From contig JAIVFI010000034.1 of assembly GCA_025558095.1 (NCBI GenBank), forward strand, positions 434,001 to 498,000: a stretch of DNA of 64,000 bases. Direction: 5' to 3'. This document shows positions 45,731 to 54,271 of this stretch, piece after piece. The position numbers and the translations under genes were made by a program. Position 1 is the stretch's first letter; every line of letters begins with the position of its first letter. The stretch comes from Hyaloraphidium curvatum SAG 235-1. Taxonomy: Eukaryota > Fungi > Monoblepharomycota. Under the pieces are notes generated by a model. That model saw only the letters and a program-made list of their open reading frames with translations, was not told the DNA's origin and did no database searches.

Positions 45731-47476
<1,746 letters not shown>

Positions 47477-47768
47477 ATGGATTGTATTTGACTTGGAGCT
47501 GTATGTACGCATTGGGACCAAACGCACGGAACCAGTCTGGTCTGGTCTAGTTTATCCGCCGGCGTCGTACTACATGAGTAACTCGATGCCACTAGGTTTT
47601 CAGAGGCAAACTGATCTACTCGCCCTACTACAACAACCTAATCGGACCGACGGTTGCCCCGTTGAATAGTGGTGTTTTCAAAACAACCGGGACTCTTTGC
47701 AAAAGAAGTTCTATATATCACTACCTATGTAAAGCGAATACCCTTCACGTCTCTATCTCCACCATAAG

Positions 47769-48791
47769 CTAAACAACAACTACCAAATTGCCGAGCTGGA
47801 AGCGCACGTCGATCGTCAGCGTCGTCAGCCCGGTGGTCATGGGGAAGGCGGTTCCGGAATTCTGGCCGATGAAGTCGATGATCAAAGGCTTGATCCTCAG
47901 GTACCGAAAGTGCATCAGAATGGGTATTGCGTCGATGTTTTGAACCGTCCTGGTCGAGCTATGAAGTCAGTAGTAGAGGTCTCGATCGATGATTGCTTAC
48001 GCACTGCCATAGGGCGGGTCCGTTGAAGACGTTCTGGCAGAAGACCTTGATGACCGCCTGTGCAGGCGGAAACCCGGGCGTGCCTTGATGTCCAGGTATG
48101 AGCAGTATGGCAAGGATGTGGGGCGCCAGTCCGTTCATGATGGCATTGCCAAGCGCCCGGAACTCCCTGTTGACCATGTTGGATGTATCACCGTTGGCGA
48201 TCTGGAAGTAGCGTATCCCGATTGCATTCCATGGTTCATCCCCATGTTGATCACATTCATTTTCTTAACTGCCGGACCAACGGGCTGCGCCATCAGGATG
48301 TTTCCGTGGAGCACCCTATTCATTGCGTGCAACGAACCAGGGAGGCATTGGCAGCCACCAAAAAGGGTTGTATGCTGGATTGGAGACCGCCAGAGAAGGG
48401 ATGAGGGCCCACTGCAAGGGGCCGAAGACGCCAAAGTATTGAAGAAAGTTGTGCACAGTCCCGTGAACGGTGGGATCGTAGACCAGGGCGCCCCAACGCA
48501 CCCGAATGAAGTGGTCTATGGAAAGAAAATCCCGAGGACCGGCCAATGCCAGGGGAAAAGCCATGTGCCGGCCTCAAGAAACCGGGGGTGCAGAGGATTG
48601 ACGGGATTCGCGCGGGGATCCGTGCTCGAGCCGGGTGAGCCGCGAACCCCAGTCGCGACAACCTCATTCACACAATTCCTGCAGTTCGTTGGTGAGCTCG
48701 ACTCCGGATTGCCTCCGACGTAGTTGCTGACCTTCTTTCTTTCAGACGTCGGTAGTTTCGCGCCCCGCTTCGCTCTCCGCCGGCATGGCAT
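47769..48791 (-). pseudogene. Degenerate unknown ORF divergent from the Fanzor gene
   Basis: Coding-like fragments in shifting frames (RDFLSIDHFIRVRWG; MVNREFRALGNAIMNG...VIKVFCQNVFN; VQNIDAIPILMHFRYLRIKPLIIDF...) and one GTAAGC..CTGAC..TAG intron (~47959-48000). Confidence 0.35.
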
Positions 48792-48983
48792 TCGGGTGCG
48801 GAGTCCGAATCCGCCTCGCCGGTCGCATGGTCATCCACTGCACCAGCCGGTTCTAGGTGGGCCGCAAGTACACGGCCATTGCCTCCGACCTCGACCCCTG
48901 CCCAAGTCACCGCATCGAGGTCCGTTCCCTCGACCGTCGACGTGTATCAATCGAGCTCTAACATTGTTTGCAACAGCAGTGAC

Positions 48984-51900
48984 ATGGGGTCGAAACGAGG
49001 GCGAACATCGGACAAGGGGTCGGACAGCGACGATCCCGGCGAAGGGTCTTCGGCACACCCACCTGCTCCCCGGAAGCGCGCCAACCAAGCCGGCGAGTCC
49101 GAGGTCGTCGATGCTGCAGCTCAGCTTCCCGTGGCCGTGGCCGTGCCGCCCAACTCCGAGTCCGACGACACGGAGCTCGCATCGTCGCTGGTGGCCGCCG
49201 TGTCGCAGAATGACACCGAGTCGGACGACTCCCGGCCCAAGGAGGCGATTCCCCAGAAGCGGCCCCGCAAGGACGGCGACAAGGGCAAGGAGCAGGCCGA
49301 ACCCGTCCCGTCGTCTCCGAAAGGCCCCGAGCCCAAGAAGGCGAAGAAGAAGGGCTACGATGCCGCCGCCGCCGCTGCCCAGGCGGCCCTGGCGCCCGAA
49401 CATTCTGCCCACCTCGAGCAAGCCAACGTGCCCACCGGTTGCCCCGCCCTGCTTTGCGGAAACACTGATCATTGGGATGCCGGTCACGGCGACGGGAGCG
49501 GCTGCCAGTTGTTTCCCTGCGGGAGCCTCTACCACAACACCAAGGAACATCTGAAGCGGCCCGATCCCCGCATGCCTTTCATGTGCCCGCACTGCGACCC
49601 GCTCAACACGCTCGACCACGACGAAGGTTTTCACTCGGTCTGCGGCACGTGTGGCGAGCGTGACCATGGCGACATCGCCCACGCGCACCCTTGCGACGCC
49701 CTCGTGTGTACCGGGAGGATCTGGGCGTCGCGTTCAAAGGAGGAACTGTGGGAGATGGTCGCAAATGGCTTCCTGTCCGAGAACGTGCTGTACTCGTGGT
49801 TCCCCCTGATCTCGTACGAGGACCACGTGCTCGAGCACAAGCATACCTTCGTTTCCGTGGAGGAGCCCAACGGTTGCCGGCCTTTCCTCGTTCACTGCGG
49901 CTCGCTGGGCCACACTCGCGCGGCGCACGACGGGGTAGAGCCTCTGTACTGTTCGCAGTGCGGATCGTTTGAGCACCGGGCCAAGGAGCACGTGCACTAC
50001 ATGTCTGCGTGCCACACGAGCGCCAACGGCTGCGGACAAAGGGGTCACTCGAAGGTTACCGCCGGGGCCTGCGTGCTCAACATCAACGATCTGAAGAAGC
50101 TCACGCCCAAGGAGGCGCTGGACGAGCTCATGGGCCCGCAGTCTGCCCAGAGGACCGTTGTCATGGCGTTCCAAAAGTTCCTGAGGTACGGGGACCGGAC
50201 GGCGCGGGAACCCGCGAGCCCAGAGGAGGAACTAGCTGCCACGCTCTACGAGGTCATCGAGGATGCCATCGGGCGGTTCACGAAGCTCTCGTTCGAGATG
50301 TCTCTGTTCATGGACCTCTTCTTCAAGTACGTGCGCGACTTGCGGCTACTGGGAGGGAACCTTCGGTACCCTCACCTGGACATGAGCCTCGGCCTGAACG
50401 CCTTCTTCGCCGTGGCGGCGCCACTCGACGGCGACGAAGACCACGCCGATACTCTGGTGCCGCTTCTGAACACGTTCCGCGACACGGAATGGCTGGGCTG
50501 CGTCAAACGAGCTGCTCGTCACGGCTACAAGCGGACGTCACGCGTTGGCCTCGACCAGATCATGCGGACCGCGTCACAAGGCTACGTGACGGCTGCCATG
50601 AACTCGGCGAAGGAAAACCTGCACGATCGGGTGCGCGCGTGGACGATCTGCAGGCTGCGCATCCCGCTGCAACCACGGCCATCGCGACCCACTTTGTCAA
50701 CAGCCTGAAGTTCTGGGATCCGAGGGAGCACCCCGCCAACACGAACCGGCCCTTCACGCTGCCAAACAACGAGCTCTACGACAAGGTCATGACCGACCCG
50801 CTGCTCCTGGAGATCTGCCGCGACGTCTACACCGAGCTGCGCGACGACCTGCTCAAGGGTCTCTACCTCAACCCGTACTGGGTCGCGTACCACTGGCAGA
50901 GGTTCTTCGACGTCCTGTTCCGCATCCAGCGGGAGCACGAGGCGCTGCGCAAGAAGCTGGTGCAGTGGACGGAGAACTTGAGCAAGAGCGAGAGGAAGTT
51001 CGCTCTCCGCAACTTTCCCTACAACCACAAGCTCGTGAAGCCCTTCAACGTCCTCCCGCGCTTCTCGACCGAAGCCAAGCACATCCTCATCGACCGCATC
51101 GCTCTTCACCAGCTCATCCAGGTGGCGCAGCGGCGGCTCGGCCAGGAGCCCACCTCGCTGGCCGACTACCTCGCCGCGGAAGCCGAGGATCCGGAGCACT
51201 GGTGGCGCATGTTCTTCCGGCCGGAGAAGGTCAACACCGGCGGCGCCGAGAATCCATCGAGGCACTTCGACTACTCCTTCTCCACCGATGCCGTGAAGGC
51301 CTCGATCACGGTTCGCGTGCGGAAGCCGGCAGAGGAGCAGCCCGGCACGTCGTTCTCCGACATCAAGATCCCCGGCATGTCCGTTGCCGGGCTCGACCCC
51401 GGCAGCACAGCCATCCTCACGATTTCGACGGGGCTCTCGACGCCGGGGGACGACAAGCACCACGGCCACAGCAAAGCCGTCAGCGTCTCCGCGGGCGAGT
51501 ACTACCACCTCGCCCGGTACAAGAACAACACGTGGAAAGCAAACCAGCGCAAGAAGCGGCACCCGTCCATCCTTGAGATCGAGCGCGACACGCCCGTGGC
51601 CAAGGCCTCCACGGTCGCTCACACCAAGCTGTACATCCACCACTGTCTCAAGCACCTCTCCACGATCGTCGGCTTCTACGGGACAAAGGTCCACCGGCGG
51701 TCTCGGTTCGACCGGTACATCGGCAAGCACACCGCGCAGGAAGCCGTTGCCGAGAAGGTCATCAAGGGCTGCGGCGTCGAAGCGGAGCGCCTTATACTTG
51801 CGTTCGGCAAGGCCAGGTTCCGTCACAACATGCGCGGCGGCGTCACGACTCCAGGGTCGGCACTGGCGTGGCTGAAGCGCATCCTGCGCCGCCGCGGCGT

Positions 51901-52239
51901 CACGGTCACCGAGGACGTGGAGGAAGACATGACGTCGCAGATCTGCGCGGCGTGCTGGGAAAAGGTCGGCAAACAACACCCGAAGAACGGGCACTACCAG
52001 ATCAAGGATTGCAGAAATCCGGATTGTTTGATCAAGTGCTGGAATCGGTTCGTTGCCTTAGGTTCTCGTCACGCAGCTCCTGACACTTCGGCCGCAGGGA
52101 CGTCATGGCTGCCACCAACATCCGCACCATTGCCTTGTCGGAGATCCTCCACGGAGGCAGGCCTCCCGTGTTCTTCTCGACGCGGAGGGCCAACTTCGAG
52201 GGACGCGATCCGGCGAGCGCGGGTGTCATCGTCAACTAG
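48984..52239 (+). CDS. Fanzor1-like (TnpB-derived) RNA-guided RuvC endonuclease, ~1,070 aa, one frame disruption near 50630-50670 and one intron 52048-52097
   Basis: FSTDAVKASI, RuvC-I VAGLDPG (D 51395-97), SVSAGEYY, ILAFGKARF, RuvC-II VEEDMTSQICAAC (E 51923-25), CRNPDC, spliced RuvC-III WNRDVMAATNI, terminal GRPPVF. Confidence 0.9.
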
Positions 52240-52520
52240 GGTCTTTCGGCCCTCCAACGACTCCTGCGTGTGTGACGATCCCGCTCAACGGTCAACTCTT
52301 GCGATCTTGAGTTCGCTCTCGAAAGCAAGGGTCGTGGCCGATCCGATCCCGACTGAGCTATGCAATGATGTTTTGATCGGGCGGGGCATCTATCCGCGGG
52401 CTCGGTCCGGGCGATCAGTGATACGGAGAAGACCCCGGCGGGTGGGAGCAGGAACCAAAACAATGGAGGTAGGGTTCATTGCTCCGGAGTCGGCGTAACC
52501 AATCGCCGTAGTACGAGCAG
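52240..52520 (+). ncRNA. Putative Fanzor omegaRNA scaffold region
   Basis: Series of stem-loops directly 3' of the Fanzor stop, the position where omegaRNAs occur; exact ends unknown. Confidence 0.55.
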
Positions 52521-52685
52521 GATGCCGGGAGGTATTGTGGTTGGCTTAGTTTTTGGTTTCTTAGAGGCTCCCGTTCATTCTGTAAACGGTACTAGAAACT
52601 TTTTCGATCACGCTACTTAAGCGCCGTGACACCGACACCGACCGTAAACAACTTAACAAAGAACCTTCATCTCTTTCTCGCAGCC

Positions 52686-54271
52686 ATGATCAGCGCGCTG
52701 GCGTTCCTGCCGCGCGGGGCGGCTGCCGAGAAGCCGTCCGTGTATCGGCCGAGCGCCGAAGACCTCGAGAAGCTGCGCGAGCTCGCCGGCGAGGAGGTCG
52801 AGGCCGCCCGCAGCGACCTCGAGCGGGCGATGGGCGAGCCCGGCGACGGCATGGAGGACGACTCGGACGCCGAGTCCGGCAGCGACAGCGGGGACAACAA
52901 AAAAAAGATCTCCCGCAAGGCAGTGCCGCCGGGCAAGGCGAACCCGGAGGACCTCAGCGAGTACCACCTGGAAGATTACGACGACGGCGAGGGCCCCGCG
53001 GACCCCGCCTCCCGGCTTTTCTCCAACGTTTCTGCCCTTGCGGTTCCTGGGCCGGACCCGTACCTGGACACTGAGGCTGCGGACAGCGACGACGACGAGC
53101 TGGTGGTCCTGGCTTCTGACGGCGTAATCATCGCCGCCCGCACCGAGGACGAAGTGAGCACCGTCGAAGTGCTGGTTTACGAGAGGGAAGAGGGCAATGC
53201 TTATGTGAGGAACGACTGGATGGTGACGGGAATGCCGCTGTGCCTCGAATGGATGGACTTTGGTCCCGGTGCCGAAAAGGGTGGGTGTTACTTGGTAGCG
53301 CCGTGGAATCTCCACCAACATTACCTTCTTATTCATTCATAGGTTCCTACATTGCCGTCGGGTCTTTCGAGTCGACCATTGACGTGTGGTCTCTGGACGT
53401 GGTCGACGCCATGCTCCCCACCTTCGTGATCGGCACCGCGCTCCCGAAGAAGACCGGCAAGAAGAAGTCCAAGCTCGTCCAAAAATCCGACGTCCAGCAC
53501 ACGGGCGCCGTCGTTTCTCTAGCGTGGAACCGGAACGCTCGGCATCTGCTCGCTTCCGGGTCCGCCGACACGACCGTGAAGCTCTGGGACCTCAATTCGC
53601 CGTCTGCCGCGGTGGCGAGCTACGCGCACCACACTGCGCCCGTTCAGGCGCTGCAGTGGCATCCTACGGACGCACCGCTGCTCGTCTCTGCCTCGCACGA
53701 CAAGACCGCGCGCGTGATCGACTCCCGTGCCCCCGCTTCCGGCCTTTCCTTCGACCTCCCCGCCGATGCCGAGGCTGCGCGCTGGCTTCCTTCAGGCGAC
53801 CGCTTCTTAGTTGCCTGCGAGGACGGTGCGGTGTTGTGCTTCGACCCGCGTTCGTCGCAGCGCGTGTGGACTCTGCAGGCCCACGAGGGTGCCTGCTCCG
53901 GCCTCGACGCCTCGCCCACATTCCCTGGGCTTGTCGTGACGGGCGGCGCAGACCGGACTTGCAAGGTCTGGGACATGCGGGAGAAGCCCCGCATGCTGGC
54001 CAGCAGGGAGTTCCAGGCCGGCCGCATCTTCTCGGCACAGCTGGCGCCGGATGCCGCCTGCGTCGCGGTCGGTGGGACTGGCGGCAAGGTGGTCCTGTGG
54101 GATCTTGGCGAAGTCGACTCCGTTCGGCGCGCCTGGGAAGGGGTCGAGGGAGAAGGCGAGAACAGGCGGGAGGTTGTGGTTGTGGAGGAAGGCGGCAGCG
54201 GGGACGAGGCGGACAGCGACGACGAGGAAGGAGAGAACGCGGGTAGTGATGGGGAGATGGAGGAAGATTGA
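52686..54271 (+). CDS. PWP1: Periodic tryptophan protein 1 (WD40, ribosome biogenesis)
   Basis: MISALAFLPRG, LSEYHLEDYD, DPYL, RTEDEVS, PLCLEW, IDVWSLDVVD, HTGAVVSLAWN, LASGSADTTVKLWDL; intron 53281-53342. Confidence 0.93.

Follow-up and report, generated by a model that had tools for sequence, protein, structure and literature searches.

Does a 64,000-nucleotide stretch of the Hyaloraphidium curvatum SAG 235-1 genome (contig JAIVFI010000034.1, positions 434,001 to 498,000 of the forward strand; hereafter the window) encode a working RNA-guided DNA nuclease? An earlier note, made from the letters alone, had proposed for positions 48984-52239 a Fanzor-type enzyme with a complete RuvC D-E-D triad, hidden by an intron and a frameshift, and had guessed an early-diverging fungal host, which H. 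curvatum is. The locus is very probably one copy of a selfish DNA transposon of the Tc1/mariner (IS630-like) kind, non-autonomous and bearing a Fanzor1 OMEGA system, and the window copy is a recent protein pseudogene. The following features of the gene are used throughout, in window coordinates:

48874..48875, + strand: site of a 74-bp private deletion, which takes out an intron-like segment ahead of the Fanzor ATG
48984..52047, + strand: exon 1 of the Fanzor1 gene, with the start ATG at 48984, interrupted in the window copy by a 61-bp deletion
50136..52047, + strand: nuclease core (WED-REC-RuvC-TNB), which superposes on solved Fanzor1s in a model of the intact sister copy L023
50671..50672, + strand: junction of the 61-bp coding deletion, private to the window copy, with a frameshift and a stop at 50706-50708
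codon 51395-51397, + strand: RuvC-I catalytic Asp in the DPG motif (GLDPG), aligned to SpuFz1 D383 (PMC10432273)
codon 51923-51925, + strand: alternative Glu of RuvC-II in VEEDMTSQICAAC, 6 residues ahead of the zinc finger, aligned to SpuFz1 E541 (PMC10711439)
52048..52097, + strand: predicted spliceosomal intron of 50 nt that splits the Arg codon of WNR/D, with GT, a CTGAC branch site and CAG
52098..52239, + strand: last exon, with the RuvC-III Asp codon at 52099-52101, the RP motif and the stop at 52237-52239

Single-sequence searches gave a weak match to Pfam TNB (E 0.025) and, with phmmer against the PDB, no match. Structure and profiles were far more informative. An AlphaFold2 model built on exon 1 of L023 (predicted template-modelling score 0.71; the last exon lies outside the model) superposes over residues 385-1041 on the three solved Fanzor1s, with VIA Z scores of 22.8 for PpFz1, 20.8 for SpuFz1 and 16.9 for GtFz1, versus 10.8 for TnpB. 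Foldseek returned Fanzor1s at E 1e-15 to 1e-17 and its next match at 1e-3, and a model of P0155, an uninterrupted relative, gives the same picture. With a profile built from the seven closest rows, the E values for GtFz1, SpuFz1 and PpFz1 run from 1e-12 to 7e-7; the wide-alignment profile matches Fanzor1s at 2e-69 (SpuFz1) to 9e-53, versus 8e-14 for a Fanzor2, placing the three acidic residues opposite SpuFz1 D383, E541 and D606. The call of a Fanzor-type nuclease therefore stood up in the profile, AlphaFold and Foldseek comparisons that the earlier note had suggested, with TnpB matched much more weakly. The family is already well studied: in addition to the three solved structures, one search with L023 exon 1 returned 247 proteins at E<=0.001 (median length of the complete ones, 652 amino acids (aa)). 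A tree was computed from 130 homologues, none of them a named reference; it is the profile built on this set that matches SpuFz1 at 2e-69.

The motifs agree with this placement. The TnpB/Fanzor superfamily pattern, D-X(125,275)-[TS][TS]-XX-C4 finger-X(5,50)-RD (PMC3627910), reads in the intact copy as D825, T1004-S1005 (X=178), C1008/C1011/C1030/C1035 and, across the intron, R1042-D1043. The Fanzor signature combines a RuvC-I DPG with an alternative Glu 6 residues before the zinc finger and a Gly at the canonical site (PMC10711439, PMC3627910); it appears as GLDPG, LAFG962 and E1001-x6-C1008, with G962 and E1001 at least 90% conserved in 148 rows. LAFG and CRNPDC also lie where expected in the window copy, in which GLDPG, AFG, VEEDMTSQICAAC, CRNPDC, WNRD and RP are all found as the note had listed them and the D-E-D residues are intact. 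Every near-full copy keeps these residues and the C4 finger, as do relatives. On the evidence of the models and profiles, the family is assigned to the true Fanzor1s, closer to them than to Fanzor2 or TnpB, with an enlarged REC.

The intron predicted before the last exon appears to be real. Among six copies, it differs at 11 of 50 columns (22%), versus 3 of 142 (2%) in the downstream exon, and relatives have an unbroken WNRD..A..I..RP segment to which the spliced last exon of the window gene aligns. The read-through length of the window gene comes to ~1,067 aa, close to the ~1,070 aa that had been given for the joined frames.

The frame break has a different origin from the one proposed. A DNA search of the organism's own genome for paralogous copies recovered, besides the window copy, five that are near-full and 95-98% identical, as well as a decayed copy and a distant relative (L027). 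The 61 bp that should follow window position 50671 are present in all five near-full sisters and gone only from the window copy; they are in-frame coding sequence for ~20 REC residues, partly alignable with relatives, and have neither GT-AG bounds nor other splice signals. A hidden intron or programmed slip was rejected on these grounds. The break itself is real, as the note had said, but it is a 61-bp coding deletion and not a simple slip, and the joined frames do not describe a natural enzyme, since the product would miss ~20 REC residues. At the locus, the frame terminates after 574 aa, ahead of RuvC, and an open frame from the ATG through RuvC was not found there. Unless the assembly is wrong, the window Fanzor is read as a pseudogene because the 61-bp coding deletion is private to this copy; it also carries the private 74-bp deletion and a broken cargo gene.

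Intact copies lie elsewhere. Two of the five near-full sisters, L023 and L024, have an open Fanzor frame. In L023 (contig 31, about 255.5-260.7 kb), the frame runs unbroken from ATG to WNR, giving 1,088 aa after splicing, and both element ends are kept; a deposited H. curvatum protein, KAI9033133.1, is 97% identical to L023. L024 has lost its right terminus, and L021, L022 and L025 each have their own frameshifts. L024 and L025 are 99.5% identical to each other and share irregular ends and a disordered N-terminus rewritten in the first 150 codons, within which L024 shows compensating frameshifts. Counted crudely among close copies, the ratio of nonsynonymous to synonymous changes per site (pN/pS) comes to 0.41 overall, with 0.31 for RuvC/TNB, and points to purifying selection on the Fanzor family.

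The sequence common to the copies extends well beyond the gene and defines an element, which the earlier note had left unmentioned:

47667..47668, + strand: left TA target-site duplication (TSD), where the flank GAATA is the side of the predicted target-adjacent motif (TAM); paralogous empty sites have a single TA
47669..52592, + strand: non-autonomous Tc1/mariner-type DNA transposon of 4,924 bp, taken as the extent of sequence common to the copies
47669..47692, + strand: left imperfect terminal inverted repeat (TIR), 16/24 matches to the right TIR, p ~3e-5
47769..48564, - strand: divergent cargo gene of ~250 aa with one intron (~48004-47950), frame-broken in the window copy
52569..52592, + strand: right imperfect TIR, partner of the left
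52593..52594, + strand: right TA target-site duplication, seen against the empty paralogous sites

The window copy is inserted in a small host repeat, other members of which show the empty site with a single TA, exactly at contig 8 and near-exactly at three more places. Because the filled site reads TA..TA and the empty one a single TA, the TA duplication is demonstrated. This duplication and the imperfect TIRs would make the element Tc1/mariner-IS630 in type, and they surround the window gene, as expected for a Fanzor encoded within a transposon of a eukaryotic genome. A transposase is absent from the elements of the window family. The left flanks of five copies read GAATA, CTATATA, CGATA, AGATA and AGATA, and four of the six near-full copies have ATA at the left plus TA at the right; since the flanks end in this way, the predicted TAM is ATA, probably RATA. 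The target itself is a short repeat of ~105 bp (window 47597-47668 and 52595-52599) with a dozen matches, internally deleted here and nested inside a larger repeat family. This larger family starts with (GTCTG)n, has at least 20 genome matches and is split by the element into 47535-47601 on the left and 52600-52630 on the right; it is possibly the 3' tail of a minus-strand non-LTR (long terminal repeat) retroelement.

All six near-full copies have the cargo gene in their left part, with exon 1 open in the five other than the window copy, and the NCBI annotation of one copy has the same splice. Its pN/pS of 0.15, again a crude count, points to purifying selection. No cargo homologue was found outside the window family. 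An HxxxxR-like stretch raised the candidate of a Crypton tyrosine recombinase, which was rejected for want of any family, homologue or atlas match.

Transposases do occur in related elements. L027 (contig 14, about 720.0-725.6 kb; L027:545-6082) is a complete, single-copy, TA-flanked element of 5,538 bp with TIRs matching at 25/30 and ends GT..AC as in the window family. It looks autonomous, carrying an intron-containing transposase with helix-turn-helix (HTH) and DDE_3 (IS630/Tc1/mariner-type) domains. Its Fanzor is 41-45% identical to the window family and has its own intron at a different place, and a 231-aa minus-strand cargo reading frame has no Pfam hit. A 10-mer common to L027 and the right end of the window family was considered as a fixed internal guide, a reading dropped because the 10-mer forms the 5' arm of the terminal stem; genome-wide it is also no commoner than its control. 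P0155, a metagenomic relative of 911 aa, also sits behind an HTH_23+DDE_3 transposase. On its contig (JGI 3300059473, 13 kb), Fanzors of 911 and 1,009 aa are oriented away from one another, with the HTH+DDE_3 transposase and a PLD-family gene in between. A profile search of the H. curvatum genome gave about two dozen further, weaker Fanzor-like matches on contigs 2, 12, 18, 20, 45 and others; several groups have identical scores and some lie in ~1,000-aa open frames, as other Fanzor families.

A Fanzor1 scaffold RNA is reported to include the TIR and TSD, with a guide of ~15 nt beyond (PMC10711439). The equivalent region of the window copy is laid out as follows:

52238..52594, + strand: predicted omega-RNA scaffold, with P1 at 52238-52253 and P2 formed by 52259-52264 with 52486-52491 around a variable insert
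52492-52507 and 52509-52594, + strand: 3' part of the predicted scaffold, namely P3 and the terminal stem P4, the latter taking in the right TIR and TA
52595..52609, + strand: flank predicted as the guide of the window copy, ~15 nt, its length set by analogy (PMC10711439, PMC10432273)

From stop to TA (355 nt), only 4% of columns vary among copies. When four divergent elements (window, L027, L065 and L068) were folded unconstrained, one common plan emerged: a post-stop hairpin (3/4), a short linker, the long-range P2, a second, small hairpin and a long terminal stem, which contains the right TIR and reaches the TA in 3/4. P2 has a pair probability above 0.9, with 24/24 cells canonical and three two-sided changes, and encloses an insert of ~50-220 nt. 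The window copy and L068 have in common a 45-nt stretch, a length reached in 0/300 shuffles. The predicted omega-RNA would be a fold of ~355 nt, or ~370 nt with the guide, and its mature form may be shorter. Rfam gave no match for the 3' region, no ghost elements were found in the genome with the 3' region as query, and no natural target of the window guide (TAM plus target within 3 mismatches) was found elsewhere in the assembly.

What, then, makes the protein so long? The earlier note was right that it exceeds the characterised Fanzors, but the nuclease core is of ordinary size. The extra length consists of two N-terminal parts:

48984..49427, + strand: disordered, charged N-terminus with basic clusters KRGR, KRPR and KKAKKK, at a model confidence (pLDDT) of ~30
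49428..50087, + strand: Cys/His-rich array of ~7-8 zinc-knuckle-like modules, residues 150-370

The first part, some 150 residues, is disordered and rewritten in L024 and L025; its basic clusters resemble nuclear localization signals and may act as such. The second, of about 220-230 aa, contains 17 Cys and 22 His in the intact copy. Its modules take the form C-x2-7-C-G-x-x-x-H-x-x-x-x-H; most end His-His, not His-Cys, and the last ends in Cys. A 35-aa, partly helical insertion at window ~49720-49830 occurs only in the window family. The array is conserved in the window family, L027, P0002, P0155 and P0156; in a tree restricted to the C-terminal part, these five cluster together with a support of 86, and the inner four with 99. 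With a pN/pS of 0.28, a crude count among copies, the array appears to be under purifying selection and confined to this five-member clade. No match was found with an array profile against the PDB or with the zinc region alone as query, and metagenome and viral contigs yielded no further members of the clade. For P0152/P0002, the gene seems to begin further upstream (L065:540-1150), with an intron and one extra CCHC-like knuckle, so that its full product probably exceeds 1,000 aa. A published description of a Fanzor with a zinc knuckle or CCHC module was not found in the literature searched, which is weak evidence of novelty because large surveys may contain such proteins unremarked. The suggestion of a possible new subtype holds for this N-terminal accessory addition only, as residues 385-1041 superpose on ordinary Fanzor1s.

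The most speculative part of our account concerns what the array does. Because the omega-RNA is unusually long, we guess that the array might bind single-stranded nucleic acid, likeliest the long omega-RNA or the 3' end of its own mRNA. A broader proposal is that a small Fanzor1 clade (two families in H. curvatum and three metagenomic lineages) gained an N-terminal atypical zinc-knuckle array together with a long omega-RNA that has a variable insert in a conserved helix, and that the array binds or helps process RNA from the mRNA 3' end, a function undescribed for any OMEGA nuclease. We put it forward tentatively and regard it as rather doubtful.

For the transposon as a whole, we propose the following cycle. 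Intact copies would yield the spliced protein of ~1,088 aa, which would enter the nucleus and bind the ~370-nt omega-RNA transcribed from the 3' end of the element through the TIR and TA into the right flank. More speculatively, the zinc array could serve as an RNA loading or folding aid, dispensable for catalysis. The nuclease would cut at matches to the right-flank guide that follow an ATA (probably RATA), that is, at the site left after excision of the element or at an empty allele. Repair from a filled copy would then restore the element and offset losses from cut-and-paste moves by a trans-acting transposase. This cut-and-restore step is modelled on TnpB and SpuFz1, and even in those systems it is in part a proposal. 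Protein from other copies might yet receive omega-RNA from the window copy, in the fashion of a ghost element.

Could the window locus nevertheless encode a working Fanzor, through ribosomal frameshifting, cryptic splicing or an error in the assembly? It keeps all catalytic residues and all RNA stems, and a database gene call, P0157, takes as its start an ATG in another frame, which the deletion fuses to that of the nuclease. The product of that call, however, would miss the initial WED strand as well as some of REC, the break is a loss of 61 coding bp without splice signals, and the second deletion and broken cargo gene are what decay predicts, so that we consider a functional window gene very improbable. 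A family whose members are catalytically silent or repurposed as RNA-guided DNA binders, for example a repressor whose zinc array recruits partners, would explain the large accessory N-terminus and the conserved WED TDG that reads TDA or TNA here, and one algal Fanzor1 showed no cleavage in vitro (PMC10530073). Such a role is nonetheless unlikely, given the intact D-E-D residues and C4 finger in every near-full copy and relative, and an element that still resembles a mobile one with variable flanks, hence variable guides. A route of mobility other than Tc1/mariner (a Helitron, a Crypton or the cargo protein as its own transposase) would fit the absence of an internal transposase, the weak TIRs and a cargo gene under selection without a known relative. 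It is quite unlikely in view of the TA duplication shown by the empty sites, the GT..AC ends resembling L027, the two close relatives that lie with DDE_3 transposases and a cargo protein with no DDE or tyrosine-recombinase family match.

Several observations also count against the account we favour, a Tc1/mariner-type element with a Fanzor1 system and its own long RNA. The TIRs of the window family match at 16/24 positions only and differ from those of L027, and because of this difference the L027 transposase may not move the window family; the ends of L024 and L025 are irregular. Taken by itself, the window 3' region does not outdo shuffled sequences in folding (z -0.8 to -1.4), and P2 is drawn from four hand-compared sequences. 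All pN/pS values come from a crude count among closely related copies. The zinc-knuckle call falls short of the threshold (Pfam zf-CCHC at E 0.01-0.02; atlas, 0.87): the curated cut-off of PF00098 is missed at E 0.018 and 15.5 bits vs 20.8, with a weak match in three of six members, and the pLDDT of the array is below 50 in the L023 model and 66-79 in P0155.

Among known systems, the closest comparison is SpuFz1 and its element Spu-1 of Spizellomyces punctatus (PDB 8gkh, 9ceu-9cez; TAM CATA; PMC10432273). SpuFz1 shares with the window family the Fanzor1 fold throughout the core (Z 18-21) and the D-E-D positions. Both elements are multi-copy and transposase-less, have inverted repeats, reside in an early-diverging fungus, show conserved left bases ending in TA (CATA vs the predicted ATA/RATA) and have an omega-RNA, here predicted, that includes the right inverted repeat. 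The proteins are 15-16% identical, and the window family has ~385 more N-terminal residues with the zinc-knuckle-like array. Its element is 5 kb long, with a cargo gene, imperfect TIRs and the WNR/D intron, vs 2.1 kb for Spu-1; the predicted omega-RNA is ~370 nt vs 90 nt, and no ghost elements were found in this genome. Most Fanzor1s have 600-700 aa, and solved Fanzor1 omega-RNAs 75-150 nt (PMC11423790). PpFz1 (Parasitella, 9cf0-9cf3) and GtFz1 (Guillardia, 9cer-9cet; PMC11423790) have the same core fold at the Z scores given above. PpFz1 is a precedent for a lineage-specific accessory domain, which there is a ~100-aa RuvC insertion that binds cyclophilin, whereas that of the window family is N-terminal and Cys/His-rich. 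In the sections consulted, Bao and Jurka (2013; PMC3627910) place Fanzor1s in TA-flanked Mariner-type TIR elements such as PGv-1, PUl-1 and PUl-4, with or without a transposase and sometimes with extra cargo; the same sections mention variable N-termini but no zinc-knuckle array, and the cargo of the window element, in contrast, is unrecognised. TnpB, Cas12f and Fanzor2 have the WED/RuvC/TNB architecture and RNA-guided principle in common with the window family but match much more weakly (Z <=11, profile E no better than 1e-13); the window family lacks an IS605/IS607 TnpA and has the long REC of the Fanzor1 type.

Host genes flank the element on both sides, with a flavin-containing monooxygenase on the left (45989-47476) and, beginning ~95 bp past the right end, a WD40 gene (52688-54271), which we take to be PWP1-like.

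Fanzor1s are candidate genome editors whose natural role is still inferred. The window family offers a natural intact copy, ends and a TSD fixed by empty sites and a testable TAM of ATA/RATA, and is ready for a standard assay. It also comes with a comparatively derived omega-RNA model, from which the variable insert could be removed, and with a conserved accessory module, the zinc array, whose role is testable by deletion. The core enzyme is an ordinary Fanzor1; it is the zinc-knuckle-like extension and the long predicted RNA that set the window family apart.

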